64,000 nucleotides of DNA from positions 151,657 through 215,656 of IMG/VR virus record IMGVR_UViG_3300046694_000296; one strand, given 5' to 3'. This document shows, one piece after another, positions 2,174 to 58,900 of this stretch. The position numbers and the translations under genes were made by a program. The notes beneath the pieces were generated by a model. The model worked only from the letters and a program-made list of their open reading frames with translations. It searched no databases and was not told the DNA's origin. Position 1 is the stretch's first letter. Every line of letters starts with the position of its first letter.

Positions 2174-2204
2174 AGCATCAACCCATTCACCGCAGGAGCT
2201 CAAG

Positions 2205-12075: not shown

Positions 12076-12621
12076 ATGTCCATCTCGTCGTTCTTCTCCA
12101 AGCTGTTCACACACGTATTCACGTGGGGCTTCCTGCTCTACGGTCTGCTCGCCCCGGCGCATGGCTACGAAAACCTCGCTGTGTTCTCGGTCGGCATGAT
12201 CTCGCTGATGTCGCTCATCGGCACGCTCGTGAGTGGCGGCATCGCCTCGGTCGACGTTCCGGGCAGTCGCTTCGGGAAGATCGCCTTCAAGCTGTTCCAG
12301 TGGTCATCCATGTTCCTGGTCATTGCGCTGGCTGAGCATGGGCACTTCATATCGGCAGCGCTGCTGACGCTCAACTTCTTCGTCCATGACGCCGCATACC
12401 GCGCCTTCCGTGCACGAGAGAAAGCCATCAAGCAGATGCTCAGGGAGTTCGCCGACGAGATGAAAGCCTACGACCAGCAGGTTGCGGCCGACGTCCAGCG
12501 TGCCAACGACGAGTATCGCGACGAGAAGCCGACAACGGTGAAGGCAGATCCGAAAGCCCCGCGTGACCCCGCCTTCGGTTACCCGTTCACCCCGCACGAC
12601 ATCGCCGCGACCAGCGCGTAA
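12076..12621 (+). CDS. membrane protein
   Basis: About 4 hydrophobic segments then a coiled C-terminus; AGGAG RBS. Confidence 0.65.
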   Translation: MSISSFFSKLFTHVFTWGFLLYGLLAPAHGYENLAVFSVGMISLMSLIGTLVSGGIASVDVPGSRFGKIAFKLFQWSSMFLVIALAEHGHFISAALLTLNFFVHDAAYRAFRAREKAIKQMLREFADEMKAYDQQVAADVQRANDEYRDEKPTTVKADPKAPRDPAFGYPFTPHDIAATSA

Positions 12622-12719
12622 CGCATCACCAGCAGTAGAAACAGGGGCCGCGTGCCCCTGTTCAGCTTCCAGACATCGGTCAGCACAATGACCGTATCAA
12701 ATTGAAAACGAGGGAAACC

Positions 12720-13787
12720 ATGCAGCCATATGGGCTTCTGAGCGACACACACCTGCACGAATGGAGCGCGTTTGCGCAGACCGGCGACGATCTGGTCAAC
12801 ACCCGCCTCAAGACCATCCAAGACGAGTTCTACCGCTGCGCCGACGAGACGAAGAAGGCGGGCGGCGACACCGTGTATCACGGCGGTGATCTGTTTCATG
12901 TGCGCGGGTCGGTTACGCCGCCCGTGCTGAATACGACGCTCGCAATGTTCGCGCGTATCTACCGCGAGCTTGGCGTGAAGTTTCGCCTGCTCCCGGGCAA
13001 TCACGACCTGACACACAAGCACAGCAACGCAGTTGGCAATGCGGTCGAAGCGATGCGCAGCGATTGGGTGGAGGTCGGCCACGACGTGCAGATCCACGAG
13101 GACCACAACGTTGTGATGGTGCCCTGGATCGAGCGTGTCGAAGACCTGAAGGCAAAGCTCGTCGAAATCCGCGACGACATCGGCAGCATCTCCCCTGGCT
13201 CGCTCAGCAACTCCGACCTCATCATCCATGCGCCGATCGACGGCGTGATCGCAGGTCTGCCCGACCACGGCCTGACCGGGGCGTGGCTCGCGGAGCTCGG
13301 CTTCAAGCGTGTCTTCTCGGGCCACTACCACGCGCACAAGGAAATCGTGCCCGGCAAGGTGTGGTCGATCGGTGCCTCGACACATCAAACATGGGGCGAT
13401 ACGGGCACGAAGGCGGGCTTCCTCATCGTCGGCGAGAACGATGTCAAGTGGCACTGCTCGCGGGCGCCGCACTTTGTGGACATCGAAGCGGGCATGGACC
13501 CGAGCGAGGTGGCGCTGCGCTGCGACGGAAATTACGTCCGCGTCAAAGTCAGCAACGCCAAGCCGAGCGAGGTCACTGCGATCCGTGACGCGCTCACGAA
13601 GCACGGCGCGCTCGGGGTGAGCGTCAATGTCGTGAAGACGCCGACCACGGGCCGCGCATCGACGAGCACAGTGAAAGCGGGCGCATCGCTTGAGGTGCAG
13701 GTGACGGATTACGTGAAGGCCGGCAGCTTCGAGCATGCCGATTTGGTTGCGCAGGGCGCAATCGCAGTTCTCGCGGAGGCAGTGTAA
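12720..13787 (+). CDS. sbcD: SbcD/Mre11-like nuclease
   Basis: SDTHLH, GGDLFH, PGNHD, SGHYH metallophosphoesterase motifs; directly upstream of SbcC. Confidence 0.85.
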   Translation: MQPYGLLSDTHLHEWSAFAQTGDDLVNTRLKTIQDEFYRCADETKKAGGDTVYHGGDLFHVRGSVTPPVLNTTLAMFARIYRELGVKFRLLPGNHDLTHKHSNAVGNAVEAMRSDWVEVGHDVQIHEDHNVVMVPWIERVEDLKAKLVEIRDDIGSISPGSLSNSDLIIHAPIDGVIAGLPDHGLTGAWLAELGFKRVFSGHYHAHKEIVPGKVWSIGASTHQTWGDTGTKAGFLIVGENDVKWHCSRAPHFVDIEAGMDPSEVALRCDGNYVRVKVSNAKPSEVTAIRDALTKHGALGVSVNVVKTPTTGRASTSTVKAGASLEVQVTDYVKAGSFEHADLVAQGAIAVLAEAV

Positions 13788-21177: not shown

Positions 21178-22050
21178 ATGATCGAAGTCAATGGCAAGAA
21201 CTGCCGCGTGCGCGTCATTGCGCACAGCGTCCCGGATTTTCGCGACAACGCGAAGGAAATCTTTACGCTGGAGTTGCGTTACTGGCGGGCGGTGCATTCC
21301 GAGCTTATGACGCACCGCGACTTCAGCCGCAACGCCGGCTCGTCGCGAGCGATCCCGGTCGCCAAGATGATCGAGCAGGTCCGCAACGACCCGGCCGGCC
21401 CGCTGCATTGGGGCAAGAACCAGCCCGGCATGAAAGCGCAAGAAGAACTCACGCTTGACCAGCAGGAGCACGCGAAGATCATTTGGCGCGACGCGGCGAA
21501 CGCAGCGGCCGACTACGCTCAGCAGATGATGGATCTCGGGCTGCACAAGCAAGTCGCCAACCGGGCTCTTGAGCCGTATCAGTGGATCAACGTGCTCGTC
21601 ACCTCGACGGAATGGGACAACTGGTTCAATCTGCGCGCGCACGCCGACGCCCAGCCCGAGATTCAAGACCTCGCCTACACCATGCGCGACGCGATGGAGC
21701 AGAGCACGCCGGTCAAGCGCGGCATCAAGCGCGACAGCGAAAACGGGTGGCACCTGCCGTATGTGCTTGACAGCGAGCGCGAATTCATTCGCCTCGACGT
21801 GCTCAAGAAGCTCTCGACGGCCCGCTGCGCGCGCCTGTCCTATGAGCCCTTTGACGGCAACGCGGCGATCGAGAAGGAGATCGAGCGCTACAACCTACTG
21901 GTCGGCAGCGAGCCGCTGCACGCATCGCCCACTGAGCACCAAGCCTGCCCGCTGCCGGCCGGCTCGGATCAAAGCCGCAACTTCCGGGGTTGGCACCAGT
22001 ATCGCGTGAACGTCGAGGCAGACGCTTATCTGGCGAAGCGCGCAGCGTAA
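21178..22050 (+). CDS. thyX: flavin-dependent thymidylate synthase (ThyX/Thy1-like, phage type)
   Basis: ELMTHRDFSRNAGSSRAIP, HKQVANR.LEP, HASPTEHQA. Confidence 0.8.
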   Translation: MIEVNGKNCRVRVIAHSVPDFRDNAKEIFTLELRYWRAVHSELMTHRDFSRNAGSSRAIPVAKMIEQVRNDPAGPLHWGKNQPGMKAQEELTLDQQEHAKIIWRDAANAAADYAQQMMDLGLHKQVANRALEPYQWINVLVTSTEWDNWFNLRAHADAQPEIQDLAYTMRDAMEQSTPVKRGIKRDSENGWHLPYVLDSEREFIRLDVLKKLSTARCARLSYEPFDGNAAIEKEIERYNLLVGSEPLHASPTEHQACPLPAGSDQSRNFRGWHQYRVNVEADAYLAKRAA

Positions 22051-22135
22051 TGCAACGGTAACGGGTTGCCTCACTATACTGATAAGTAACCCGTTACACA
22101 CGGTTAAAACGAAACCTCTACAGGAGCAACACCTC

Positions 22136-22816
22136 ATGACCGAAGCCGCAAACATGAACACGATGGACAACACGACCTACCACGCTGAAGTCCTGTCGAC
22201 CGAATCGAAGCCCGACGCGATCAACTTCGGCCCGGCGACGCTGATGATGGCGCTGAACCTCGCCGTGCAAGCGGGCAACCTGCTCGACCAGATCAAGCGC
22301 GCCGTGTTCTACGGCAAGGACATCGACCCGCAGATCGCCGGCCAGGCGCTGCAAGCGATTCCTGCGATGGCGAACGACATCAAGTTCCCGCTCGCGACGG
22401 ATCGCTACCGCGACCCGCGCGACGCCGATTTCTACAACAGCATCGACCCGAAGGCGAAGGAAATCCTGTCGCTGCATGGCGTGGACGTGCGCCTGCTGCA
22501 CGCGGCCCTCGGTCGCTTTACCGAGTCCACCGAGTTCATCGAGGCGCTGGTCCCGACGTTCTTCGGTCAGGTGTTCGACAAGGTGAACGGTCTGGAAGAA
22601 ATCGGCGACGGCCGCTGGTATGACGAGATTGCGCTCGACGCACTCGGCTACACCGCGGAGCAGTGCAACTTCACGAACATCAAGAAGCTGAAGGACAAGA
22701 AGGCGGGCCGCTACCAGAAGGGCGCGTTCGATCCGAACGCTGCAGTGGATCGTGACACGACCGCCGAGCGCGCACTGCTCGAAGCGGGCGCGGCCACCGA
22801 AGCACAGGCGGCGTAA
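22136..22816 (+). CDS. MazG-like NTP pyrophosphohydrolase
   Basis: LLHAALG..TE..E, DKVNGLEEIGD..WY, NIKKL...RY. Confidence 0.75.
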   Translation: MTEAANMNTMDNTTYHAEVLSTESKPDAINFGPATLMMALNLAVQAGNLLDQIKRAVFYGKDIDPQIAGQALQAIPAMANDIKFPLATDRYRDPRDADFYNSIDPKAKEILSLHGVDVRLLHAALGRFTESTEFIEALVPTFFGQVFDKVNGLEEIGDGRWYDEIALDALGYTAEQCNFTNIKKLKDKKAGRYQKGAFDPNAAVDRDTTAERALLEAGAATEAQAA

Positions 22817-23443
22817 GTGATTGGGCTTGCAGGTTCGCAAAGAACGGGCAAGTCCACGCTCGCGAAGGCGTATGCGGAGGAGTCGGGGGTGAAGTTCATC
22901 GCCACCGGCGCTTCGGCCACCTTCGCGCGTCTTGGACTGGATCCAAAGAAGGACTACGACTTCGCGACGCGCCTGCGCACACAGCGTGAAATTCTCGCCG
23001 ACTGCGACCGGCTCTATGACAGCGCAGGGGTGCGCTTCATCACCGACCGCACGCCGATCGACTTTCTCGGTTACACGCTCGCCGATGTCACACGCGAGAA
23101 CGTGCGCGGGAAGCTCGAAGTGGAGCTGCAGCGCTACGTTGACGATTGCTACGCCTGTGCGAATAAGCACTTCACCGTGCTCATCCTCGTGCAGCCGGGC
23201 ATCGCGCTCGTCGAGGCAGAAGGCAAGGCGCCGGCAAGTCCGTCGTATATGGCGCACGTGAACGCGCTGATGCTGGGCCTGATGGCTGACGAAGCACTGC
23301 AAGCCGACCACTACAAGATTCCGCGCCGGGCCATCGAGCTCGAGATTCGGATCAGCGCGGTCGAGGAAGCAGTGCGGAAGTCAGCGCAGCGCCACGTCGC
23401 GAAGATGGAGCGATTGCACGAAGACGGGCTGGTGCTGCACTAG
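22817..23443 (+). CDS. P-loop nucleotide kinase (dNMP kinase/AAA_28-like)
   Basis: IGLAGSQRTGKST, FITDRTPID. Confidence 0.75.
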   Translation: MIGLAGSQRTGKSTLAKAYAEESGVKFIATGASATFARLGLDPKKDYDFATRLRTQREILADCDRLYDSAGVRFITDRTPIDFLGYTLADVTRENVRGKLEVELQRYVDDCYACANKHFTVLILVQPGIALVEAEGKAPASPSYMAHVNALMLGLMADEALQADHYKIPRRAIELEIRISAVEEAVRKSAQRHVAKMERLHEDGLVLH

Positions 23444-23511
23444 CCAAAAGAGGGAACCGACAATATCAATCAGTCGGTTCCCTTTCAAAACAACGAATTA
23501 GAGGACATTCC

Positions 23512-24138
23512 ATGACCACTCAGAACGTCAAGCTGACGAATCACGCCCGCGACCAGATCATCCAGAACGCCCTGCACGGCGCGTTTGAAAAGGAGCGCAA
23601 GGCGAACAAGGCTCGTCTGACCAAGCTCGCCGACAAGTGCTATCGCTCGACGGTCAGCGTTGCGACCGAGAAGGCTGCCCGCCAGGCGCCCGACGACTTC
23701 CTGTATCTGTGCAACGTGATCTCGCGCATCTACTTCCGCGATGCGGAGCTGCGTCGGAACATGGACACGGCCTACGATGTGGAGCTCTCGCGTGCCGTCC
23801 CGTTCCCGGGCCGTCATACCACGCTGACCATCGAGTCCAAAGAGCTGCATGCCGAGTATGTGGAGATCATGCGAGTGGAGCGCGAGCTGGACCAGAAGCA
23901 CAACGACCTCGCGGAAAGCCTCAAGCGCACGGTCTACAGCACGTCCTCGCTCAAGAAGCTGATAGAGATGTGGCCGGAGGTCGAGAACTTCCTGCCCGCC
24001 TCCGTCACCGCACCGAAGCCCATGCTTCCGGCGCTGCCCGTCGGCGATCTGAACAATGCGCTGCGCGCCGCCGGGGTCAAGGTCGGTGTCATCGTCACGC
24101 CGAAAGCAACCGGCGGCCTTGTAGCGGTGGCAGCATGA
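23512..24138 (+). CDS. Nmad5-like (nucleotide-modification-associated) protein
   Basis: KLTNHARDQII N-terminus and SLKKLIEMWPE..FLP C-terminal signature, recalled from that family. Confidence 0.55.
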   Translation: MTTQNVKLTNHARDQIIQNALHGAFEKERKANKARLTKLADKCYRSTVSVATEKAARQAPDDFLYLCNVISRIYFRDAELRRNMDTAYDVELSRAVPFPGRHTTLTIESKELHAEYVEIMRVERELDQKHNDLAESLKRTVYSTSSLKKLIEMWPEVENFLPASVTAPKPMLPALPVGDLNNALRAAGVKVGVIVTPKATGGLVAVAA

Positions 24139-25409: not shown

Positions 25410-25477
25410 AGCCAAGAACCCGAAAATCCCCGCCGAGCGGGGAGCGATTTTCCACCACCTATAAGGATCACCCGATC

Positions 25478-31577: not shown

Positions 31578-32613
31578 AGCTCACCCCGTGGTTCCCGCCG
31601 GACACGAAGCCTGTCCGTCCCGGCATTTACATGGTGGAGGCGACTAACCTCTGGTGGCGCTATTGGGACGGCGAACGCTGGCACTTTGGGGTGAGTGTTT
31701 CGGAAGAAGTGCCCGCTCCGACACGCGCCTCGAAATGGAATATCGCGCCGAATCAGAACGTCGCGTGGCGCGGCTGCGCAGAGGAGCAACCATGCCTGAG
31801 CTCCTGACCGACGAAGAGATCGAGGCGATCACCCGCGCCGCCTACACGGGCGGTAAGGGCGATCCCGAGCGCGACGTGCGCCGCCTGCTCATGCACACGG
31901 AAGTGCAGGGCGGGGCGCTCAAGGCTGTGGACGAGTTCTTCGCCATGCGTGAGAAGGAACTCGGCAGCCTGTCCAAAGAAGCCGCAAGCGTGCACAAGCT
32001 GGTGCGCGCAGCACGGGGGATCAAGGAATGACCGACGAGCAGAAAACGCAGCTGGAAGCGATCGTCGCGTGCCGGCCCGACTTCCTGCTGCATCACATCG
32101 AGCACGACACCAACTACGACGCCAAGCTGCTGAAGAAGGTGTTCGAGCTGGCGAAGGAGCGCGCGAACGCGCTGCTGGAGAGGGACGCGCTCTACACGAT
32201 GGGTCAGATGCGCGACTACGCGCTTGGGTTCCACGAGTTGCGGGTCGGGGAACTGCGAGTCGATGCCGAGCGGTATCGACTCGTGCGGCAGGGCAAGGCG
32301 TTGACTGTGCGCGTGCCCGTGAAAGACAAGCAGATCATCTACTACCTCGCGGACAAGCCTGAGCCGGGCTTTCCCGAAGCCTATGACGCCGCGGTGGACG
32401 CGGCGCGAGGGGTATCGCGATGAGGATCACGATCACCACCGCGCCGGCCCGCCGTAAGCCGCAGGTGGGCGACCGCAAGCTCATCAACGGCGTGGTCCAC
32501 GTTCGCAAGCTGAAGCATTGCCGGGACGCGTATGGGCGCGTCATCGGCGTCGACAAAACAGGCGGGCGCTATCACTACGAGTGGGCGCCGGTCGTCACGC
32601 AGGAGAAGGCAGC

Positions 32614-33159
32614 ATGATGACGTTGCAGCAGTTCTATCTGACGAAGATCGCGGAAGAGGCGGCGGAAGTCGCCAAGATCGCGTTGAAGGCGCAGCAATTC
32701 GGGTTGACCGAGGTTCAACCCGGGCGCGAAGCGAGCAATGCCGAGCGCATGTATGCGGAGCTCAATGACCTGAACGCGATGGTGCTGGAACTCAACCGCG
32801 TCGGCTTCGGGCAGTTCTACTACCAAGCCAATCACGCGGCGATGTCCGTGAAGATGCAGAAATGCGAGAAGTATCTCGGCTACTCACGCTCGCTGGGCCT
32901 GGTCGAGCAGCCGCAGCCGGTATCGCTCGAATACGTCGAAGGCATGATGGAGTCGATGAACATGGAGCTCGCGGTCGAGACGTCCCTGCGCGAAGAAGTG
33001 ACGTTCAACGGCCACACCGCCGTCGTCGAGCAACGCTATGACAGCCAGGAGCGCCGCTACGGCCAGTGGATCATCGACGGGCTGGAGATGGACTACTACA
33101 AGGCGGTCGTCGCGCTGATGAAGCCGAAGGTGGTGCACACCGAGCAGGTGGCGGCGTGA
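32614..33159 (+). CDS. small MazG-like domain protein
   Basis: LTKIAEEAAEVAK.ALK..FG...AELNDL. Confidence 0.55.
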   Translation: MMTLQQFYLTKIAEEAAEVAKIALKAQQFGLTEVQPGREASNAERMYAELNDLNAMVLELNRVGFGQFYYQANHAAMSVKMQKCEKYLGYSRSLGLVEQPQPVSLEYVEGMMESMNMELAVETSLREEVTFNGHTAVVEQRYDSQERRYGQWIIDGLEMDYYKAVVALMKPKVVHTEQVAA

Positions 33160-43500: not shown

Positions 43501-46500
43501 GAGCACAACGGTTGTCCGATCGACGGGTTCTACGTCCGCAGACACGGTGCTGAGGGGCTGGAGCTCGCCTCCGACGCGCTCGCACGCGAAACCGGGATTC
43601 CTTCGGGCATGCTCGCGTCGCTCCAGATCGAGCACGACGAGGTATCGCACCAGTTCGGCCCGGGTCCGGGCACCCGCGCGGTCGCCAACAAACGTATCGC
43701 CAAATGGGCGACGACGACACTCTCCACGCTCTTCTGAACGCCATGAACATCGAACAACTCCGACTCGCCCGCCGCACGCTCGAACAGATCCGGGTGCGGG
43801 CACTCCACAACGAATTCTCGGGCAAGCCGCGCTACCGAGACTTGAACGGCTGCCTGTGTGCGGTCGGCGCACTGATGCCCGACTTCGTGCTCGACAAGAT
43901 CGCGGACAGCAAGAACAACGAGTCGAGCATCGGCGGGCTCGTATTCACGCCGCCGGGCGATTCGCCGTATCGCCGGGTCCGTGTGATCCAGGTGATCGTG
44001 GAAGAGACGGGGCTGGGCCGCTGGGACATCAAGGATCTCCAGCAGACGCACGATAACGTGCCGCACTCTCAGTTCCGCGAGAGCGAAACATGGACCGCAG
44101 ACGAACGTCGCGCACGGGCCAACGAGCGTGTCCGTAAGTGGGCCGAGAGCCGGCTGGAACAACTGTTTTAACGGGGGCAGTGCGAAGGACCAAAACGGGT
44201 GCCGATAGCGGGCAAAAGACCCGCGTCGAATCCGTTTTAACAGCCCGAATCCTGGCGGGCCAAACACCGGGCAACGCACCATAGGAGGCGCGCCATGAAG
44301 GGACGCTAATCCACCACGAAACCACACATCTACACGCCAATAAGGCCCGGGTTACGCACTGTAATACCGGGCCTTATTTCATGGTCCGACAGCCTGTTAC
44401 GCCGAGGAACACTAAGTCATTGATAGTAAACAAGAATGTTGTATTTCCGTAACTTGCTCGTTTACGCAGTCAATTCGCTGCCAATGCAGACCGCCCTGAA
44501 GAGGCTCGACCCGCAATTGAGACACGGCAGAAGCGTGCCGAACCACCAGCAATACCGAGACAACCTGCAACGCAAACGAAGCGAATGCCGAGCGATCTGA
44601 CACGCCCGAGACGATCATCCAGACCAGCAGCGATCCCGCAATCGCCCGACCGGTAAGCGAATAGGATAAGAATCGTGCTTTTGACCGCAACGACGAATCC
44701 GAGGAGATCAACACTCACACACCGGATCGCGGAGACTCAATCACCCGTATGGACCCATTCATATAGCACTCATCCATACATAGAGAGAACACACTCCACA
44801 CGCCTTTACGTATAAGAACTCCTGGTGGCTGGGCCTGATCGTTCTCTTTCAATCGTCGCCCTCCAGCAATTTCTTATACCGCGCCGCCAACCCATAGCCG
44901 CACTCACACATGCCAATTACCGCCAATGCCAAGCTGGGTAAGGGATTGCGGGCTTTCGAATCCGTGGACTCGGTGCCGTGGAATGGGGATGGCGAGAGGC
45001 CCGTATAGGCGCGTTCCTATAAGATCCGAGGCCCGCCGTATAAGTTCTTCCTATAAGAGTCTCCTATAAGGTTCGCCACGGCCCTATAAGTTTGGCCCCG
45101 CCTACCTATAAGTTTGGCATGCCGTGGCACGTGCGTGTGTGGAAAGACGATCTCTTCCTATAAGGTTCCAAGCCTTCGTCTCGATACTGGTGTCTCTCCC
45201 ACCACGAAGCGAGCAACGCAATGCAGATCAATCATCCGAACGTCGTCCCGTGCCAGGGCTACGGTTATGGTGCCGTGCAGAAGCCGACCGATGTGTATTC
45301 CTCGATGAGCGACAACTTCGTCTATCTCGGCGAGCGGGTCTTCAACTGCCATCCCTTCCGTGATGATGTGCAGGGTTGGCCGATTCGCTGGGAGATGAAC
45401 GAGCACGACCGCGCTGACCTGGCGTCGCACCGCGAGTTTCTTGCATCGCTCGGGTGATCCAATGACGGGCCAAGCGCCCGTCTCTCTTCATGGTGTGAAC
45501 GCCAAGGCACGCCGTGGAACGCCTTGGATTGCCGTGGCACCGGGAGAGTGAGAGGTCCGAGCCTCATCCGTGACCCGGGCGTCACAATGAAAGCTCACCA
45601 ACAACGAGGTTCACCATGAGCACGACCAACATCACCCCGGAACGCAAAGCAGAACTCTCGGCAAAGGGCTTCTACATCGAGGACATGAAAGCGGTGTGGG
45701 GCGAGGGCTGGTGGGACGGTTCGTTTCGCTGGATGAAGAAGGGCTCGGATGAGTTTCAGGACGGCGACGTGAGCAGCTTGGAAGAGAACGCATGGAAGGT
45801 GTGCGACGCATACGATCGCGAGACGAGCGTTGCCAAGCCCGGGCACTATCTCGTCTCGCGCGAGGTGGTCGGTTCGGAAGCCCGGGACAAGATGGTCGCT
45901 GGTCTGCGCGATGAGGAGTTCGACTTCACGATCACGGAGACGCAACCGGGGCACTTCACGGTCACGGTGCAGTCGCCCGAGGGCGTGTGTTGGGGCTGAT
46001 AGTGGTTGACGGGCCGAGCGCCCGTTGTTCGAACACACCGCCGTGGATCGCCAGGGCAGGGCGCATCAGATCCGCACACACCGGTTCGGGCGCCGCATGT
46101 CGATCGTCAAAATAGAGTCTCACCCACTCAGAGATTCACCGAAAACATGGTCACAGCCACCATCACGAAGTTCACCCCCGAAACCAACGTCGCCGTCGAG
46201 GGCAACCCGGGCGGGTATGCCGCGTTCGAATACAGCCTGTTCAACGACGACGACGTGAGCATCGTCGCCTCGATCACGGTCCCGATGTGCTACTTCCTCG
46301 ATGAGCACACCAACCTCGCGACGACCGCCTTCGCGTCGATGGTGACCGAGATCGTCAACACCGAGCCTGAAGACTACGCGAAGCTCGTGGGCCGCACCTT
46401 CGAGTAACCACCCGACGGGCCAGTGTGCCCGTTGTGCAGCTGCAGCGCCGTGGCAGCACTCTCACGCATCCTCATCGCCCTATGCGGGCGCCAATGCCTC

Positions 46501-47929
46501 GTCGGGAGACTGAAGTCTCTTACACAACGAGGTGCATCATGGTTGAACAGCTCCAGTGGTTTCTCGCCGTCTTGCTCGTGATCGCTGCCGCGGTCGGTAT
46601 CGGTGCGGTGTTCTGGTTCGCTATCGACGTCGCAACGGGCGGCATTCGTCGCGCACGGGAGCGCCGACGCTGTGCGATGCCCAATCGCATCGCAACCCTT
46701 ATGCGCGGGCGTTGAGCGACCTACCGGGACACTCCGTGTCCCGAGTTGCAAAAACGACACTCATGTAAGAGGGTGCCTACAAATAATTCGGTTGATATAG
46801 GCATACCAATGGCCGAGGAGCCGCACCGGACAAGGAATCGGAATTTGTTACTCGAAGTTACACCCTATTACACCTCTTTCATCCGCCAATCGTTTGGCGC
46901 ACAATTTCTACATGCACTGACCGGTGAACAAAACCTCTGTGCAGCCAAAAACCAGTAAATAATTCCTTCCCGAAGAGCACTACGGCAATGAGCAAGATCG
47001 CATTCGAATGCATGGACGCATCCAACAACACGTTCACGGTCAAGATGGAGTCGGACTCCGCGGAGATTGAGCAGGTGGTCGCCGCCACCGTGCAAGCCTA
47101 CAAGCGCGAGGGCATCGAAGTGTTCTCGGCAACCCGCATCGAGGAGATGGTGGTCGACGTCGATATGTATGCGCCGGCCGAGCGCCGGGCCGCAGTGCCG
47201 ACGGCTACGCTTGAGCGCCTGGCGGGCCGTAGCGGCTCATGGCTGCAGCGCGGGGCGGCGCTCGGTGCGCTAGTCCTCGCGATCCTTGGCTTCGATGCTG
47301 ATCTGTCGATGGTGGCGCGCGTCGCCCATATGGGCGGGGCCGTTATGACCGTCGTCCACGCGGCTGTCTGAATCCGCGGAAGCGAAATCCGTAGAGGGCG
47401 CTCTAAAGTGATGAGTCTCGTTGCTCGCACAGGTGCCCTCTCCAATGTTGTCATGGTTCAGTGAAGGAATGTGGATGATCCCCCTCTATGGGGTGGTGTT
47501 CATCCTGTTTGTGCTGGTGTTGTGCGTAGTGTCCGCGTTCTGCGATATGCGCGCACGGCACCGGTATGAAGCGAGCGTGCGCCGCTACTACGCACGCCGC
47601 CGTCTGTTCTAGTCGTGCCTCACCTGCGGTGCCCATGCGCACCGTCTTGGCCGGGCCGTGGCGGGGCAGGTGACGCGTCCAAGCGCGTGCCGTGAGGTAG
47701 TCGAGAGAATGACGTCTCTTGCAGCGAATGAGTCGCTGCACCACCTCTCAAGGAGACTGTCATGCTCGCCCGCCTCATCCACGTCGAAACGCTGCTTGCC
47801 GATAACGATCTCGATCGCGAGCTGGATGAGCTGGAACGAATGCAGGAGCAGGAAGAGCAGCGCGCCGCCCGGGCCACCCGCAGTGTGCGTCGCCGCTCGC
47901 ATGCGCAAGACTGGGCGCGGATCGACTAG
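37552..47929 (+). other. array of about 30 small co-oriented hypothetical genes (accessory/early region)
   Basis: Chains of ATGA-coupled ORFs of 55-175 aa (e.g. 38561..39028, 39298..39636, 40173..40592, 40589..41116, 42064..42573, 42617..42916, 43333..43737, 43743..44171, 45221..45457, 45616..45999, 46147..46407, 46988..47371, 47762..47929). Confidence 0.7.
45016..45164 (+). repeat. cluster of CCTATAAG direct repeats
   Basis: Perfect copies at 45016, 45050, 45063, 45083, 45105, 45157; variant CCGTATAAG at 45036. Confidence 0.9.
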
Positions 47930-47985
47930 AATTGCCGTAACAACGATTTACCTGAGTGGTCTTCGCCTAACACGCAAGATCTTTG

Positions 47986-48014
47986 ACGGCACCCGTTTGG
48001 GTGCCGTTTTTTTT
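47986..48014 (+). terminator. intrinsic terminator ending the small-gene array
   Basis: ACGGCACCC-GTTT-GGGTGCCGT then T-run. Confidence 0.85.
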
Positions 48015-48489
48015 CGTGTGGCCGATTTTGCCACGGCTCAAGGCCCGTATAGGCGACTAGGCTGAAAAGCGCTCACCGGCGTGCAGCGGGTTTGGTGCCG
48101 AGCCGCCCGGTGCCGCGGAATGGGGATGGCGACGGACCCGTATAGGCGGCTTGGACGAAAAGAGGGCGACGCCGGGCAGGGCGCCGGGCCAAGGGCCAGG
48201 GCCAAAACCGGGTGCCAAGACCCTTCGGGCCGCAGAAGATCAGGGCCACAGAGCATCGGGCCATGACGATGTTAGAGATGCGTAACAATATCGTTAGAGA
48301 TGCGATACATCGCACCGCGTAACACATTCGTTAGAACTACCAGATATCCCAGGGTGACGCATCGCGCGCCCGCCCCTCACATAAGAACAGAACGCGCACG
48401 CACGCGACTACCAGACGCGCCCGGGCGTCGTCAAGCGGTCCTCGTAAAAACAACGTCAACAAATCTCTAACTTTTTTTGCACAAACCTA

Positions 48490-48517
48490 TTGCGTAAGTA
48501 ACGCGTTACTCTATAAT
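48490..48517 (+). promoter_or_regulatory. strong sigma70-type promoter with a perfect palindrome in the spacer
   Basis: TTGCGT-16 nt-TATAAT; spacer contains AGTAACGCGTTACT (48497-48510); A/T-rich upstream. Confidence 0.8.
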
Positions 48518-48596
48518 TCATCCCTGTAGCACGCAGTAACGAACGGGACGCACAAAGCGCCCGACGAAAAAATCAATCACTCAATAAGGTAAGAAA

Positions 48597-49268
48597 ATGT
48601 CGAACGCAAAAGAGCAAGTTATCACCCTCGAAAACGTCAAGCTCGCTATCTCGCGCGCAAATGACCGTCACTCGAAAAAGACCGGTGAAACGGGTTTTCA
48701 AGCTGACTTGCTGAAAGCAGTCAAATACTGGGACGATGGTTTGTGTGTCTTCGTCGCGGGCATGCTGAACCGGGCGCGCATCGACCAACTGACGTTCTTG
48801 TCTACCATCGCAGATAACATGCCCGTTAAAGCGGTGATGCGCGCTTCTGAGTTTTTCGCTTGTTTGCATGCAAAGAACTACAAACAGCTTGACGGTGTAA
48901 CCGCGCTTTCGATTCTGAGCGCGATTCATGCGGGCGCTGTCTCCCGTAGCGCGATTTTCTTCGCATCGACCGGGCGCGGGAATGAATCGACGTCTGACGT
49001 CGTTAGCGATGTTTCGCTTGTTCGCAAGCTGCAAAAAGCACTTGGTAAGACGGTCGGTGCTACCACTGAAAGCACGCAGAATTCCCGGTCGTTTGGTGTA
49101 AACGGGTTCTGTCGCTTTCTCAATATGGGCGAAATGGTAAAGGTGAAGGGCAAAGAAGCAGTGTTAGAAGTTAATGCTAAATCGCCCTTTGTTGCTGCTA
49201 TCGCTAAGATGGTAGAGGTAGCAAGCGAAGATACCCTGTCGCTTGTTAAGGGCGCGAAGAAAGACTAA
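48597..49268 (+). CDS. hypothetical protein, candidate first-expressed gene/regulator
   Basis: 223 aa ORF, TAAGGT RBS, atypical codon choice, flanked by perfect palindromes. Confidence 0.75.
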   Translation: MSNAKEQVITLENVKLAISRANDRHSKKTGETGFQADLLKAVKYWDDGLCVFVAGMLNRARIDQLTFLSTIADNMPVKAVMRASEFFACLHAKNYKQLDGVTALSILSAIHAGAVSRSAIFFASTGRGNESTSDVVSDVSLVRKLQKALGKTVGATTESTQNSRSFGVNGFCRFLNMGEMVKVKGKEAVLEVNAKSPFVAAIAKMVEVASEDTLSLVKGAKKD

Positions 49269-49331
49269 GTAACGCGTTACTTGCCCGGGCGCTAATCGCG
49301 CCCGGTTCTCTACTCTGCTAGGTATCCCGCT

Positions 49332-49550
49332 ATGTCTTCGCAAGTCTTCGCCCTTGTCGTGCTCTGGTCTGTTCTCATGGTCGTCGCATCGTTCGCCCTT
49401 GTGCATATCGCTTTCCCTGCTCGCACTAGCACGCAGATTGACATCGAACGCGCCCGCGCCCGCATCGACGCTAACCGCAAGCGTCGCGCGATGAAAGCAA
49501 ACGCGCCCGCTAAACGTCGCATTGCCCGCGCTATTCGCGCCCGCGTCTAA
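49332..49550 (+). CDS. small membrane-anchored Arg-rich protein
   Basis: Hydrophobic N-terminal helix and ARAR-rich tail. Confidence 0.55.
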   Translation: MSSQVFALVVLWSVLMVVASFALVHIAFPARTSTQIDIERARARIDANRKRRAMKANAPAKRRIARAIRARV

Positions 49551-49614
49551 CCGCACCATACGGGCGCTACGCGCGCCCGCTACACCTTGCCCACTGCTTA
49601 CCCTTACCCGCATC

Positions 49615-49827
49615 ATGAAAACCGCTCAGACAGTCTCTAATCGCTTCGTCGCATCGCACGCATACCATGCCCGCACGTGTCATGGGTTCAATGCAGAGAA
49701 TGACGCATGCGACGCCCAGCGTTACACCACTGCGCACGGTGCGTGCTGGGTCGATTCGTTCGATACCATGCACGATGCACTAGACCATTTCAGTCTATCA
49801 CTTGGTTGGGATCACGAACCATTCTAA
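49615..49827 (+). CDS. small hypothetical protein
   Basis: MKTAQTVSNRF... ORF inside the motif-free island. Confidence 0.4.
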   Translation: MKTAQTVSNRFVASHAYHARTCHGFNAENDACDAQRYTTAHGACWVDSFDTMHDALDHFSLSLGWDHEPF

Positions 49828-50150
49828 TACATAGCAAACCGAACTATTACGCGCCCGGGCACCTCGCACCGGGCGATGAATCGAAACGGTTGGGGCACCT
49901 TGGTGGTCTTAGAAGGAATCGCGTTACTGGTGGGGCCTCGTTGGAAATTTTTTCCAGATCCAGACCCGATCCTTATACAGCCAGGAGCCGCGAAATCCGA
50001 GATCCTTATAGGGCCAAGGCAGAGTGGGGAAGGGGGAAGTGGGGCTTTGGGAAGATGGAAAGCCGAGAGCCGAAAGGGTGGACGTGAGCAATCCACCCTG
50101 GCCGGCGGCGCTAGGGGCGCTGGCGCGCCCCGCAGCTGCCCGCCTGGGCC

Positions 50151-53371: not shown

Positions 53372-54019
53372 TCAATAAACCGTGTGTTTGCGGATCGGGG
53401 TGTTGATCGCTTTTTCGTGGGACCAGCCTTTCTTGAGCCGGTAGCGAAGGGCCTGTGTCGAGCATCCGATCTCCCGCGCCCATGCTTCCATAGGCTGCGT
53501 GCGCCCGTTCGCGGTCAGCAGAACCGTTGTGCTCATGTTCGCGCCCTGTTCTTGGCGCGTCGCCCATCGACAGTTGGAGGGTTCGTAGTTGCCATCGACC
53601 TCGTTTCGTTCGAGTGTGGTGCCGCGCGAACGCGGCCCCATGTCGGCATAGAAGTTCTCGAACGTCTTCCACCGCTCGCAGACTGTGATGCCGCGGCCGC
53701 CGTATCGCTCGTAGCCATTGCAGCGGGGATCACCGGTGCGATAGAGCATCGCCTGCCACGTCCGGTATTCAGGCGTGTCGGCCATACCGTGCGTGCGCCG
53801 ACAGTCGCCGCTCTTTGCAACCTCAAGCTGCAGGCAGCCGCACGACCGCACCTTGCCGCGCTTCAAATCCGCGCTCGCGGCGGTGTGCTCCTTCCCGCAA
53901 TCGCACACGCACATCCATTTTTCGCTGCCCGCATACGACAGCGCGCGCAGGCGCCCGAACTGTTTATTCGTCAGGTCTTGGGGCTTAGGCCCGCTTTTCT
54001 TCTTGCCGGTCGATTCCAT
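53372..54019 (-). CDS. free-standing HNH-like endonuclease
   Basis: DLTNKQFGRL, W.C.CDCG, SCGC, YGGRGITVCERW..FENFYADMG, LER..VDGNYEPSNCRWAT..EQ.AN. Confidence 0.85.
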   Translation of the reverse strand: MESTGKKKSGPKPQDLTNKQFGRLRALSYAGSEKWMCVCDCGKEHTAASADLKRGKVRSCGCLQLEVAKSGDCRRTHGMADTPEYRTWQAMLYRTGDPRCNGYERYGGRGITVCERWKTFENFYADMGPRSRGTTLERNEVDGNYEPSNCRWATRQEQGANMSTTVLLTANGRTQPMEAWAREIGCSTQALRYRLKKGWSHEKAINTPIRKHTVY

Positions 54020-54059
54020 GTGTGGAAAAATGAGTAACGCGTGACTTACCTTATACCAG

Positions 54060-54707
54060 ATGACAACTACTCCGACAGCTCTCCGTGTTTCCGTTGACGC
54101 GCTTCGTGCAAATCCGTGGAACACCAACAGCCTCACACCCGAGAACGAAGCGAAGCTCGATGCTTCCATCGTGCGCTTCGGCGTCTACAAGCCGATCGTC
54201 GTGCGCCCGCACCCGGACGGCGAGGGCTACGAAATTCTGGGCGGTCAGCATCGGTGGGAGGCAGCGCGCCGCGCGGGCCACGCTGATGTGCTGATCGTCA
54301 ACGTCGGCCCCGTGTCTGATCTGACGGCCAAAGAGATTGGCCTCGTCGACAACGGCCGCTACGGCGAAGACGACACGCTGGCGCTCTCGCGCTTGCTCAA
54401 GGAGATGGGCGTCGAGGACATCGGCACCTTCCTTCCCTACACCGACGGCGAGCTGGAAAACATTCTCGCTGCTTCAAGTATAGATCTCGACGACCTAGAC
54501 AAGCTGGATGAGGCCGAAATGCCTGATCTGTCGGGTCCGGGCGTGGGCGCCACGCATCAGGTGATGCGCTTCAAGGTGCCTGTCGAGGATGTCGCGTGGG
54601 TCACGAGCGCCATCGAGCGCCGCCAGCGCGAGGCCGGTTTCACCACCGAAGACTCCATGACGAACGCCGGCATGGCCTTCGTCGATCTGATGAAGGCATA
54701 CAAATGA
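54060..54707 (+). CDS. ParB/Srx N-terminal-domain protein
   Basis: LRANPWNTN, GVYKPIVVRP, EILGGQHRWEAA; no obvious HTH. Confidence 0.8.
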   Translation: MTTTPTALRVSVDALRANPWNTNSLTPENEAKLDASIVRFGVYKPIVVRPHPDGEGYEILGGQHRWEAARRAGHADVLIVNVGPVSDLTAKEIGLVDNGRYGEDDTLALSRLLKEMGVEDIGTFLPYTDGELENILAASSIDLDDLDKLDEAEMPDLSGPGVGATHQVMRFKVPVEDVAWVTSAIERRQREAGFTTEDSMTNAGMAFVDLMKAYK

Positions 54708-55168
54708 TCCGCTACATCGGCACCAAGGTCATTCTCGCGCGCCCCATGACGCGCGGCGCATACAACGACTATCGAGGCTGGACGATTCCCGCCAACGAAG
54801 ACCCGCTTGAAGAAGGCTATCTCGTCGAATACACGGACGGCGGTGCGTCGAACCACGTCAACCACGCGGGCTATGTCTCCTGGAGCCCCAAGGACGTGTT
54901 CGAGGCAGCCTACCGACCCACCGTCGGCATGAGCTTCGGTATGGCTATCGAGGCGATGAAGATAGGCATGCGCGTCGCACGCGTGGGCTGGAACGGCAAG
55001 GGCATGTTCCTTGAGCTTTTCAGCCCATCCGGTGCCGGCCTCATTCTCCAATCGGGCGAGAGCATCTCCGAGCTTCCGTGGATCGGTATGAAGACCGTCG
55101 AGGGCAAGTTCGTGCCTTGGTTCGCATCGCAGGCTGACATGCTCTCGGACGACTGGATCACGGTATGA
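54704..55168 (+). CDS. DUF2829/Tad2-like domain with an extra N-terminal domain
   Basis: C-half MSFGMAIEAMKIGMRVARVGWNGKGMFL...VPWFASQADMLSDDW; N-half YIGTK...GYLVEY...YVSWSPKDVFEAAY. Confidence 0.75.
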   Translation: MIRYIGTKVILARPMTRGAYNDYRGWTIPANEDPLEEGYLVEYTDGGASNHVNHAGYVSWSPKDVFEAAYRPTVGMSFGMAIEAMKIGMRVARVGWNGKGMFLELFSPSGAGLILQSGESISELPWIGMKTVEGKFVPWFASQADMLSDDWITV

Positions 55169-56089: not shown

Positions 56090-56806
56090 ATGACCACATA
56101 CACCATCGACAAGCGCTTCCACACGCGCGTCGCGCGCAGCCAGCGCGTCGTGGAAGTCGCTGAAGCGTTCGGCCTTGGGCTGGACGACAAGGAATTCGTG
56201 ATCTTCGACCAGCTGAAGCTGGACGTCGCGCAAGGCGACGTGATCTACATCACCGGCCAGTCCGGCAGCGGCAAGTCGCTGCTCCTGCGCGAGCTGTCCG
56301 CGCAGATGGCCGCCGAAGGCCAGAAGGTCGCGAACCTCGATGAGGTGGCGATCGACCCGGATGCGCCGCTCATCGACCAGATCGGCACCAGCACGAACGA
56401 TGCGATCCGGCTGCTCTCGATTGCCGGCCTGAACGACGCGTATCTCTTCATCCGCAAGCCCGGCGAGCTCTCCGACGGCCAGCGCTACCGCTTCAAGCTC
56501 GCCAAAGCCATCGAGTCGCAGGCCGACGTCTGGGTCGCTGACGAGTTCATGGCGGTGCTCGACCGGACCGCGGCCAAGGTGATCGCGTATGCCGTGCAGA
56601 AGACCGCGCGCAAGGTCAACGCGACCGTGATCGTTGCGACTACCCACCTCGACCTCGTGGAAGACCTGCAGCCGTCGCTCTACATCGAAAAAAGGTATCG
56701 AGAAAAGCTGCGCATCGAAGCATTCACCGACCTCAACGCGGCGGCCGAAGGCTCGAAGACCCTCACGCGCGATGAAGCCTACGACCTCATGAAAAGGATG
56801 GCCTGA
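56090..56806 (+). CDS. stand-alone ABC ATPase
   Basis: GQSGSGKS, LSDGQRYR, VADEF, ATTH; no permease nearby. Confidence 0.85.
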   Translation: MTTYTIDKRFHTRVARSQRVVEVAEAFGLGLDDKEFVIFDQLKLDVAQGDVIYITGQSGSGKSLLLRELSAQMAAEGQKVANLDEVAIDPDAPLIDQIGTSTNDAIRLLSIAGLNDAYLFIRKPGELSDGQRYRFKLAKAIESQADVWVADEFMAVLDRTAAKVIAYAVQKTARKVNATVIVATTHLDLVEDLQPSLYIEKRYREKLRIEAFTDLNAAAEGSKTLTRDEAYDLMKRMA

Positions 56807-57135
56807 TGAACCCGAAGTATGAAGCGGCGCTCGAAGCGTCGAAGACCCGCCCGCAAGTCGTGATTTTCACGGCAGCCTGGTGCGGCCCGTGCAAGCTGCT
56901 CAAGCCCGCGCTGCAGGCGCTCAAGGCCGACTACGGCTTTGACTATCACGAGTTCGACGCAGCGGAGTTCGAGCAGGCGGAGTTGCTGACGCTCGGCGTG
57001 CGCAACGTGCCGAACGTGCGCGTGCTCCTGAACACCGTCGTGAAGGCACAGTTCGTCGGCGCGCGCACGAAGGCGCAGGTCGAGGACTGGCTCACGGAGC
57101 TGGGCGTCATCTCGCGCGGACTGAGCTTCGAATGA
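56806..57135 (+). CDS. thioredoxin
   Basis: FTAAWCGPCK, GVRNVP. Confidence 0.9.
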   Translation: MNPKYEAALEASKTRPQVVIFTAAWCGPCKLLKPALQALKADYGFDYHEFDAAEFEQAELLTLGVRNVPNVRVLLNTVVKAQFVGARTKAQVEDWLTELGVISRGLSFE

Positions 57136-58322: not shown

Positions 58323-58760
58323 ATGAACCTCACGATCAAGCAGATCGAGATCATGAAAGTGGTGGCCGCAGCCACCGCTGCCGAGCCGGTCGATCTGGAT
58401 CAGCTGCTCGAACGCCTGCCCTACGCGACCACCAAGGAGAGCCTGCAGTTCTCCTTGCGTGCGATCGAGCGGCACGGGCTGATCGACCGCAGCCACGCCG
58501 AGCACCGCCGCGGGCGTCTGCGGCGGCTCGTCAAGCCTACGGATATGGGGCGCGCGGTGATTGGCGGAACCGGCAGGCCGGCGCCCGGGCCGGGCTCTTC
58601 GATCGGAACGAAGTCGGACGAACCGCAGTTTGTGGCGAGCTCCGATCCGCGACTCATGGAAGAAGTAACGCAGGACTTACCGGAGCCGGAGCTTCTTTCT
58701 CTCCCGGAGCTGTCTCTTCCCGAGCCGGTGCCTTTCCTCGAAGAAGAGTTTATTGATTAA
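58323..58760 (+). CDS. winged-helix DNA-binding protein with acidic tail
   Basis: LTIKQIEIM...LDQLLERL..TKESLQFSLRAIERHGLI...R.LVKPT..G. Confidence 0.7.
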   Translation: MNLTIKQIEIMKVVAAATAAEPVDLDQLLERLPYATTKESLQFSLRAIERHGLIDRSHAEHRRGRLRRLVKPTDMGRAVIGGTGRPAPGPGSSIGTKSDEPQFVASSDPRLMEEVTQDLPEPELLSLPELSLPEPVPFLEEEFID

Positions 58761-58900
58761 AAAGTAAGCATTTTTTGTAGTTTTTACCACTTGTCACTTT
58801 TTCGGTTTCCCTCTTATATATAACCTTCTTTTTTATACATAGTAAAAAACTACATTCTAAAAACTATGGGAAACCCCAAAAAGTGACAAGTAAGTAAGGA
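58761..58900. repeat. AT-rich region with two interleaved inverted repeats
   Basis: 58789-58811 pairs with 58868-58891; 58776-58787 pairs with 58842-58854. Confidence 0.8.

Follow-up and report, generated by a model that had tools for sequence, protein, structure and literature searches.

A gene cassette purged of GG/CC words in a phage-plasmid-like genome, and depletion of GG/CC words from the same conserved gene across related elements

A self-contained cassette and its flanking regions

The window analysed here is a 64,000-nt stretch of IMG/VR record IMGVR_UViG_3300046694_000296 (positions 151,657 to 215,656), derived from a phage-plasmid-like genome of roughly 105 kb. It contains a promoter-to-terminator cassette of approximately 1.5 kb with three genes, which lacks every (A/C/T)GG(A/C) word on both strands (HGGM and its reverse complement KCCD). 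Relatives are designated below by L numbers. The features of the locus, in window coordinates, are as follows:

47985..48008 (+): strong intrinsic terminator ending the upstream + strand gene block, with a 10-bp stem followed by a T run.
48044..48179 (+): left flank with two copies of a 43-nt element (93-bp spacing), each carrying the CGTATAGG motif, and conserved in all close relatives.
48186..48262 (+): array of GGGCCA-type iterons directly upstream of the island, carrying KCCD sites only on the + strand (coordinates approximate, read by eye); a 15-bp periodic array sits at the same place in relatives such as L004.
48261..48439 (no strand): upstream regulatory region, free of sites except TCCT at 48439, with CGTTAGAG/GCGTAAC repeats at 48271-48351.
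48392..48407 (+): 16-mer of alternating purine and pyrimidine, ACGCGCACGCACGCGA, identical at the same relative position in the A. baumannii lineage, with exact matches in L003/L045 and in L064-L072 and L133.
48440..49913 (no strand): strict HGGM/KCCD-free island, on both strands.
48490..48517 (+): sigma-70-type promoter (TTGCGT, 16 nt, TATAAT) with the perfect palindrome GTAACGCGTTAC (48498-48509) in the spacer; relatives, including A. baumannii, have TTGCA(C/G), 17-18 nt and then a TAT-type -10 at the same place.
48597..49268 (+): gene 1 (223 aa), the conserved core of the island, from an unannotated protein family with the motif sTAsTQxSS.
49269..49307 (+): second perfect copy of the palindrome (49269-49280), followed by a GC hairpin made only of GGGC/GCCC words.
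49332..49550 (+): gene 2 (72 aa, hydrophobic N-terminus), a slot that varies between relatives.
49615..49827 (+): gene 3 (70 aa), a small Asp/His-rich protein, conserved in the close relatives and recognisable in L095 by eye only, without support from an alignment statistic.
49852..49875 (+): terminal hairpin (CGCCCGG ... CCGGGCG), with the purge ending 38 bp downstream of it.
49914..50150 (no strand): right flank, a conserved non-coding block with GATCCTTATA twice (49968, 50001) and a TGGAAA/TTTCCA hairpin, in which sites return at full density.

The promoter matches the -35 consensus at only 3 of 6 positions and was not called by a simple promoter scan, although the original prediction had regarded it as the best sigma-70 promoter in the window. 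Its palindrome is found at many intergenic sites of this genome. The 12-bp direct repeat proposed to bracket the island is present at 48415 and 49849, but a third near-copy lies inside the island at 49448 and all three are parts of hairpins built from the allowed words, so it is not a special bracket and does not mark a mobile cassette. The reported AGGT ribosome-binding sites were confirmed, and 0 of 27 Ala codons are GCC.

No function, fold or known family was found for gene 1. The island proteins gave no match in Pfam or PHROG scans, and a fold search against PDB and BFVD (predicted structure of gene 1 with pLDDT 84) and a profile search against PDB sequences gave no meaningful match; thus no known anti-restriction protein (Ocr, Ard or the T5 pre-early set) was recognised. 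The island showed no DNA similarity to cultured phages, the gene 1 protein of the A. baumannii lineage had no match in cultured phages, a scan of GTDB genomes for gene 1 gave no confirmed hit, and Rfam and tRNA scans of the island and its flanks were negative. Gene 1 was also considered as an iteron-plasmid Rep initiator, but it did not match the fold of Rep structures, and the A. baumannii element carries RepM, DnaB and primase elsewhere.

The purge is complete and is kept by selection

The absence of HGGM/KCCD sites from this island, as originally predicted, is real and stronger than first described. The window holds 3917 sites (61.2 per kb), but none lies between 48440 and 49913, a 1475-bp gap in which about 90 sites are expected, and the only site back to 48261 is the TCCT at 48439. 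A search for similar gaps, set beforehand as a way to refute the observation, found that the next unrelated gap in the window is 162 bp, and there was one island per genome, with no other gap in about 300 kb of related DNA. Within the island, a run of exactly two G is followed by T 50 times and by A or C once, compared to 1535 and 3870 times in the rest of the window, while GGG runs are used freely. When all IUPAC 4-mers were scanned, KCCD and HGGM were the largest absent words, with 47 and 45 expected on the + strand, and a maximum-gap scan of the whole window again returned HGGM (48152-49914) and KCCD (48439-49935) as the top two. A local Markov score for absent words also worked, but was blunted because local trinucleotide counts already reflect the purge.

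Composition does not explain the gap, as dinucleotide-preserving shuffles of the island gave 68.1±6.5 sites (minimum 50) against 0 observed. The 370 non-coding bases of the island hold 0 sites against 22.6 expected, showing that coding, non-coding, promoter and terminator DNA are all purged. Shuffles that keep the protein and codon usage of each gene gave about 15 HGGM plus 7 KCCD in gene 1, and synonymous shuffles gave 8 sites in gene 2, against 0 observed in both. The maximum-gap scan also picks up genes with strong codon bias, such as a gene in Stenotrophomonas phage BUCTxx99 that lacks HTTD, but synonymous shuffles explained that gap (P = 0.07) and it was used as a negative control.

The purge is kept by purifying selection in every relative of gene 1 (46-100% identity), and close relatives differ by many synonymous changes and recombination patches, with no directional mutation spectrum, yet none creates a site. 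Close relatives L002/L006 and L012-L014 keep the sense strand nearly free of KCCD while tolerating some HGGM, which hinted that only the template strand matters, but this does not hold across the family, as L107 and the L127 gene copy at 12535-13155 show the opposite bias.

Using the neighbouring helicase as anchor, we found the same protein family, convergent with the helicase, in dozens of 100-118 kb elements with a GC content of 41-67%. In these elements the island is purged of lineage-specific words, which are KCCD, GCCD, GGC/GCC, GGV/BCC, or every GG/CC dinucleotide (L092, L121), so that HGGM is only the version of this lineage of a superfamily-wide purge tied to one conserved gene. Among the ten strand-symmetric dinucleotides only CC/GG is depleted (median 0.37, minimum 0.02), with an order of depletion of GGC 0.17, GGA 0.19, GGG 0.56 and GGT 0.86. 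The purge persists down to 14-17% protein identity, and a closed 113-kb A. baumannii phage-plasmid has exactly one such island. The proteins are depleted of Gly, Pro and Trp, with 14 of the 149 representatives retrieved (best-scoring hits) having none of the three, and the survivors are coded as GGT, as A-CCN (a Pro codon preceded by A) or as TGG-T. Second, unpurged paralogues exist in the same genomes, so the constraint belongs to the locus and not to the protein. Some family members are not purged (L130, L066, L103), and the cultured relatives without gene 1, Pseudomonas phage nickie and BUCTxx99, show no purge.

What may read the GG/CC word

The interpretation first offered, that virion DNA may carry a bulky modification at HGGM which hinders host RNA polymerase, or that the segment is injected first and evades a host factor reading this word, was only partly supported. 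The cassette is self-contained, and the removal of target words by selection at the DNA level overrides codon choice and, in relatives, even amino-acid composition, as predicted for avoidance of a DNA-reading factor and with precedents in regions that enter the cell first. However, nothing shows a base modification at HGGM or that this segment is injected first; contig starts are arbitrary, and one contig ends inside the tape-measure gene. As the elements are phage-plasmid-like, the terms virion DNA and first operon are assumptions.

We propose that the island is a site-free safe harbour, in which gene 1, its promoter, its terminators and any co-transcribed genes are kept free of the short word read by a factor acting on double-stranded DNA at GG/CC steps, most strongly at GGC and GGA, less at GGG and least at GGT. 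In this view, every other stretch of DNA in the cell, host or element, would carry such a word about every 16 bp, and the cassette would be the only DNA that cannot be hit, allowing host RNA polymerase to keep transcribing it from its sigma-70 promoter while the factor is active. We think that the factor is most likely a very frequent-cutting nuclease or nickase that travels with this element superfamily and acts at entry or at induction, and gene 1 would then be its antidote or controller, which must be expressed from DNA that the factor cannot destroy. We give this reading a probability of about 0.4. Our analysis establishes the purge, its exact word, its limits at the transcription unit, its maintenance by selection, its link to one gene family and its variation between lineages. 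In contrast, the existence of a DNA-acting factor, its being a nuclease rather than a modifier, its being encoded by the element and the role of gene 1 are inferences, as are any DNA modification, the timing of expression and the order of DNA entry.

The total, strand-symmetric absence of a word and its reverse complement is the signature of double-stranded DNA recognition. The absence covers non-coding DNA and stops within tens of bp of the upstream regulatory region and the last hairpin, and the trait follows the element superfamily across very different hosts. The neighbourhood is rich in defence and anti-defence cargo (Tad2-like, TIR, KAP NTPase, YoeB, SRAP). However, no nuclease or methyltransferase with such specificity was identified, nor any matching host restriction system. 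The only HNH/REase-like ORF (53372-54169) is absent from some relatives (for example L012-L018, while L056 has a different 215-aa gene there) and looks like a homing element. A cutter hitting a word every 16 bp requires the rest of the element to be protected in some way, and we found no such protection. A test for genes co-occurring with gene 1 within ±10 kb, where many loci are truncated, gave nothing convincing. The boldest form of this reading, which remains tentative, is that SSU5/pABTJ2-type phage-plasmids carry a so far undescribed system that attacks or marks double-stranded DNA at GG/CC steps with lineage-specific flanking rules, with the gene 1 family (524 clusters at 50% identity) as antidote or controller, made intrinsically immune by deletion of the target word from its own DNA, even at the cost of removing Gly, Pro and Trp from the protein.

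Alternatively, the element may modify G or C at GG/CC words in its own DNA, with the cassette lacking the words so that it stays unmodified, either because the adduct hinders host RNA polymerase or regulator binding, or because a host nuclease cuts modified DNA. Phage DpdA enzymes modify 2-3-nt motifs with 7-deazaguanine, and in CAjan GGC and GA (hence GGA) are modified and GGT is not, matching the order of depletion seen here, while a modifier needs no separate protection for the rest of the genome. The window carries a nucleotide-modification-type cluster (ThyX-like, two MazG, a dNMP-kinase-like protein and Nmad5), but this suggests thymidine chemistry, and the word has no obligatory T or A. 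No G- or C-modifying enzyme was found in the 64-kb window, and no TGT/DpdA, preQ0-pathway (FolE, QueC, QueD, QueE) or DNA methyltransferase gene was found in Pfam and PHROG scans of about 70 window ORFs, which left about 25 kb of this element unscanned, or in the RefSeq annotation of the A. baumannii plasmid pAba10324c. Deazaguanine, hmC or glucosyl adducts are not known to stop RNA polymerase, and the template-strand bias of close relatives is reversed in L107 and the L127 gene copy. We consider this unlikely, although it is the best of the alternatives.

Less likely still, the gene 1 protein may itself be the GG/CC-directed factor, for example a transcription-blocking DNA binder or a nuclease used for host shut-off, with its gene lacking targets so that it does not shut itself off. 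The purge always coincides with gene 1, in A. baumannii the island holds gene 1 alone, the word varies along with the gene 1 lineage, and the two perfect palindrome copies flanking gene 1 suggest autoregulation. However, gene 1 has no nuclease or DNA-binding signature, the downstream genes of the operon are purged too, which gene 1's own expression would not require, and unpurged paralogues and family members exist.

An RNA-level constraint, such as avoidance of an endoribonuclease site, of Shine-Dalgarno-like or anti-Shine-Dalgarno-like words, or of stable structure, is doubtful. It would be consistent with the limits of the purge at the transcription unit, the sense-strand bias of the close relatives and the AGGT ribosome-binding sites, but in most lineages the word and its exact reverse complement are both removed from the same strand, the promoter and the untranscribed upstream region are purged as well, strong GC hairpins are kept and the strand bias is not consistent. 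Avoidance of a CRISPR protospacer-adjacent motif is very unlikely; type I-F systems, which use CC, are common in Acinetobacter and two lineages lack every CC/GG, but protecting 1-2 kb does not protect a 105-kb replicon from targeting elsewhere, most lineages keep ACC/GGT or CCC/GGG, which would still serve as such motifs, and a dependence on flanking bases (K..D, B..N) is not a known property of type I-F recognition. Finally, a compositional artefact, foreign origin or context-specific hypermutation, such as by a deaminase, might be suggested by an island GC content 8-20 points below the genome, but is contradicted by the 20-68 sites still expected in dinucleotide- or codon-preserving shuffles, the abundance of GGGC, GCCC, GGT and ACC, the recombination patches with substitutions in all directions between the window (W) and L001, the persistence of the purge over protein divergence, and the negative control.

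Comparison with known systems

Local avoidance of a restriction site in a region that acts first is known, but a complete, strand-symmetric purge of a 2-4-nt word from one conserved gene, maintained across a superfamily of widespread phage-plasmids and strong enough to remove three amino acids from the encoded protein, has to our knowledge not been described. The purge provides a sequence-only read-out of the specificity of a putative DNA-acting factor, points to one small gene, and bears on how an early cassette survives while all other DNA in the cell is attacked. In T5, the first-step-transfer (pre-early) DNA is, as proposed here, a small early cassette transcribed by host RNA polymerase, which lacks sites present elsewhere in the genome, is flanked by conserved, repeat-rich non-coding DNA, and survives while host DNA is destroyed; how it escapes the A1 nuclease of the phage is unresolved, and absence of sites has been proposed. 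The documented T5 case is one 6-bp site (EcoRI) over about 10 kb at a defined genome end, whereas here 12 of 256 tetramers, and in relatives a whole dinucleotide, are missing from 1-2 kb, without homologues of A1, A2 or dmp and in an element that looks like a phage-plasmid.

In the Autographiviridae (Murciavirus, T7-type entry), only the first-acting leading region needs to lack the restriction motif, while the rest of the genome keeps it, and the region is variable and rich in anti-defence genes. There the motif is that of an identified host Type I system and involves a few sites, while here the trait follows the element across hosts. 7-Deazaguanine modification by phage DpdA (CAjan, GA and GGC; iggy, GA) shares the reading of 2-3-nt G-centred words, with GGC and GGA as targets and GGT not, but here GA outside GG is not avoided, and a term search of the CAjan paper turned up no modification-free island. 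The chlorovirus frequent-cutting nicking and modification systems, such as Nt.CviPII/M.CviPII reading CCD, include a viral nuclease with an asymmetric, degenerate 3-nt CC-centred word that degrades host DNA early; there the viral genome is protected by methylation and no site-free gene has been described, and no such enzyme pair was found here.

Among the SSU5/pABTJ2-type phage-plasmids, the E. coli SSU5-like phage PhiR41_1 has no detectable gene 1 and only a weaker island of a different word. The nearest isolates of the window are Burkholderia assemblies, and its own clade is represented only by metagenome contigs and Burkholderia draft contigs of 75-229 kb, whereas maintenance as an extrachromosomal plasmid in lysogens holds for the A. 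baumannii relatives, which are circular PLSDB records with RepM. The backbone and gene order are the same as in the SSU5/pABTJ2-type phage-plasmids, with a DEAD helicase, two ParB_N proteins, an ABC ATPase, thioredoxin and terminase, as well as PolIII alpha, ribonucleotide reductase, SbcCD, MoxR and a sigma factor, and a size of 100-115 kb. Gene 1 homologues occur in 153 Acinetobacter plasmid records, and the elements concerned include plasmids found in many clinical A. baumannii isolates.

Delimitation and anatomy of the purged island

The window has a GC content of 61.9% and contains 3917 HGGM/KCCD sites (61 per kb), of which none lies between 48440 and 49913. From 48261 onwards the only site is TCCT at 48439, and the next unrelated gap in the window is 162 bp. 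Inside the island a run of exactly two G residues was followed by T 50 times and by A or C once, compared with 1535 and 3870 times, respectively, elsewhere, while GGG runs are frequent in the island. We subsequently scanned every IUPAC tetramer, which identified KCCD and HGGM as the largest absent words, with 47 and 45 expected on the + strand, and a blind maximum-gap scan of the whole window returned the same two words at the same place. Three controls excluded trivial causes. Dinucleotide-preserving shuffles of the island gave 68 ± 6.5 sites (minimum 50), the 370 non-coding bases of the island contained 0 sites against 22.6 expected, and shuffling of synonymous codons within each gene, which keeps both protein and codon usage, gave about 22 sites in gene 1 and 8 in gene 2, against 0 observed. 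The codon GCC is never used for Ala in gene 1, although the GC3 of neighbouring genes is about 0.85.

The island lies between a + strand block of replication and nucleotide-metabolism genes and a convergent − strand block. The + strand block contains PolIII alpha with a UDG domain, gp32, FEN, RecA, SbcCD and ribonucleotide reductase, a ThyX-like protein, two MazG, a kinase-like protein and Nmad5, and a sigma-70-like protein, and ends at a strong terminator at 47985–48008. The DNA polymerase III alpha (2145–5549) carries a C-terminal uracil-DNA-glycosylase-superfamily domain and is followed by a NUMOD4/HNH homing endonuclease ORF at 5593–6090. The ThyX-like thymidylate synthase, MazG, the dNMP-kinase-like P-loop protein and Nmad5 are clustered at 21178–24135, with the second MazG at 32518–33159, which suggests a non-canonical pyrimidine in the DNA. 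The − strand block ends with a DEAD-box helicase, beyond which are two ParB_N proteins, a Tad2-like protein, an ABC ATPase, thioredoxin, terminase and portal. The Tad2-like (anti-Thoeris) ORF, at about 54704–55168 (1971–2435 in the related locus L056), lies between the two ParB_N genes, and relatives carry TIR, KAP NTPase, YoeB/antitoxin, SRAP and Rap1a-like genes around the island. The region is a hotspot for defence and anti-defence cargo. An AT-rich stretch of about 160 bp with no G/C-rich words (58735–58897) is located upstream of the small-terminase region and is conserved in the related loci L001 and L003, and could be a pac site, an origin or a promoter region. The cassette itself consists of the following features:

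48490–48517, a sigma-70-type promoter
48597–49268, gene 1 (223 aa)
49332–49550, a variable small gene (gene 2)
49615–49827, a small Asp/His-rich gene
three hairpins, built only from the allowed words GGGC and GCCC

The purge starts upstream of the promoter and stops 38 bp after the last hairpin. The promoter spacer contains the palindrome GTAACGCGTTAC. With up to two mismatches the palindrome GTAACNCGTTAC occurs 18 times in the window against 1.5 expected (at 904, 6796, 11541, 12005, 12618, 20558, 22058, 22086, 24907, 29955, 40159, 48498, 49269, 49916, 54034, 56076, 61049 and 63680). Most of these sites are intergenic, with several at or just inside ORF boundaries, and they usually follow a TAA stop and are often followed by TATACT. 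The only two perfect copies flank gene 1. The palindrome looks like a genome-wide promoter or operator motif, perhaps for the sigma-like protein of the element (861–1559). A second motif, YTTATAGG/CGTATAGG, forms a cluster of about 8 copies in a GC-poor 230-bp stretch at 45000–45230 (− strand), with two further copies on each side of the island (48046 and 48139, 49968 and 50001) and one at 25459; these could be iterons, parS-like sites or promoter cores. Directly upstream of the island (48186–48262), and at the same position in the close relatives L001–L018, is an array of 2–7 copies of a 15-bp iteron (CATCGGGCCACGAAG type), which carries target words on one strand only.

Conservation of the purge in relatives

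Homologues of gene 1 with 46–100% identity were found in metagenome contigs of 105–107 kb and in Burkholderia assemblies. In all 21 loci the sense strand lacks KCCD across the unit, over 822–1919 bp, and in most loci HGGM is absent as well, with two relaxed lineages (L002/L006/L008 and the Burkholderia isolates). The window and its relative L001, which are about 99% identical, differ only in three patches (45250–46750, 48250–49100 and 56500–57000), a pattern indicating mosaic recombination. One patch replaces the first half of the island with a version differing at about 8% of nucleotides, almost all synonymous, and although the substitutions run in every direction, no site is created, which is purifying selection and not hypermutation. 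No second island exists in about 300 kb of related DNA. The 215.7-kb contig IMGVR_UViG_3300046694_000296, of which the window is the last 64 kb, itself holds two related but different genomes of about 107 kb, head to tail, with gene 1 at 83% and the helicase at 91% identity, and is probably an assembly chimera of co-occurring strains.

Using an alignment of the helicase as anchor, we collected about 75 further loci with a helicase identity of 45–91% and a GC content of 41–67%. A strand-symmetric maximum-gap scan identified an island 2–6.5 kb downstream of the helicase in most loci with enough flanking sequence, and the purged word depends on the lineage.

Table. Words purged from the islands of helicase-anchored loci, with example loci.
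Purged word: example loci
KCCD: L095, L075, L110
GCCD: L107
GGC/GCC: L111, L117, L122
GGV/BCC: L064–L072, L078, L070, L126
every GG and CC: L092 (1377 bp at 46% GC, 181 expected), L121

The main ORF of all these islands is one protein family, which is linked to gene 1 by BLAST and HMM chains and always lies convergent with the helicase. Over 38 non-redundant genes, only CC/GG among the ten symmetric dinucleotides is depleted (median observed/expected 0.37, minimum 0.02), with the order of depletion being GGC 0.17, GGA 0.19, GGG 0.56 and GGT 0.86, and synonymous shuffles confirmed the context effect in the distant lineages as well. The strand bias seen in close relatives is reversed in L107 and in the L127 gene copy at 12535–13155, so the inferred recognition is of double-stranded DNA. 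Some distant members are not purged, and some genomes carry two members of the gene 1 family (L127/L128 12535–13155 and 14426–15259; L092 20322–20912; L121 10256–11335), of which one is purged, or purged on only one strand, and the other is of normal composition.

The purge was also visible in the encoded proteins, since Gly (GGN), Pro (CCN) and Trp (TGG) cannot be encoded without GG or CC. The protein of the Acinetobacter baumannii lineage (266 aa) has 2 Gly, 0 Pro and 0 Trp, and that of L092 has no Gly and no Trp. The remaining Gly codons are all GGT, Pro codons are preceded by A, and Trp is followed by T. A profile search of 1.84 billion representative proteins identified 524 clusters, and among the 149 best-scoring representatives retrieved, 14 have no Gly, Pro or Trp at all. 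The median content of the three amino acids together is 5.2%, against roughly 12–13% in ordinary proteins.

The GGV-free lineage matched 153 Acinetobacter plasmids of about 90–160 kb, of which 152 were from A. baumannii. The circular plasmid pAba10324c (113,420 bp) has the same backbone plus RepM, DnaB and primase, and, when scanned as four segments together covering the whole record, contains exactly one GGV/BCC-free island. This island spans 63111–64265 with 63 sites expected (the next gap is 213 bp), and contains gene 1 alone, with promoter TTGCAC-17-TAATAT and AT-only hairpins. An identical 16-mer of alternating purine and pyrimidine, ACGCGCACGCACGCGA, which is prone to Z-DNA, is located 165–205 bp upstream of gene 1 in both the Burkholderiales-type element of the window (48392–48407) and the A. 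baumannii plasmid lineage (L133 6822–6837; L064–L072), although the two gene 1 proteins share only about 17% identity. Cultured relatives without gene 1 (nickie and BUCTxx99) showed no such purge. The cultured SSU5-like Escherichia coli phage PhiR41_1 (L132) showed only a weaker 1.3-kb island (17265–18591) with a different word, MGGB/VCCK (42 expected), covering a 216-aa gene and two small genes at the equivalent position, without detectable homology to gene 1.

Gene 1 gave a confident structural model (pLDDT 84), predicted to be mostly helical with a beta-hairpin near the C-terminus, but nothing similar was found in PDB or BFVD, and searches of Pfam, PHROG and PDB sequences gave no match. The conserved motif sTAsTQxSS is located in a loop that the model predicts with low confidence.

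Interpretation of the purge

The absence of HGGM from the island, as described in the original prediction, was confirmed and extends into a superfamily-wide rule. The accompanying interpretation was partly supported, in that target avoidance in a self-contained cassette agrees with our data, but its specific claims of a modification at HGGM, first injection and a bracketing repeat were not shown. What the sequences do show is that a word and its reverse complement have been removed from one transcription unit, that the removal is maintained by selection and follows the element and not the host, and that it is graded by the base that follows GG. The factor itself, its mode of action and the role of gene 1 are matters of inference. 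The simplest cause is avoidance of a factor that reads GG/CC on double-stranded DNA.

We tentatively favour a frequent-cutting nuclease or nickase that comes with the element, with gene 1 as its putative antidote or controller. The main rival explanation is a short-motif base modification, although no such enzyme is encoded in the sequences scanned, while RNA-level causes, CRISPR motif avoidance and mutational artefacts fit the data poorly. For the modification rival, the closest comparison is DpdA of CAjan, which modifies GGC and GA but not GGT. The favoured reading, a nuclease or nickase with gene 1 as its antidote or controller, would follow the logic that has been proposed, in a still unresolved case, for T5 first-step-transfer DNA and the A1 nuclease.
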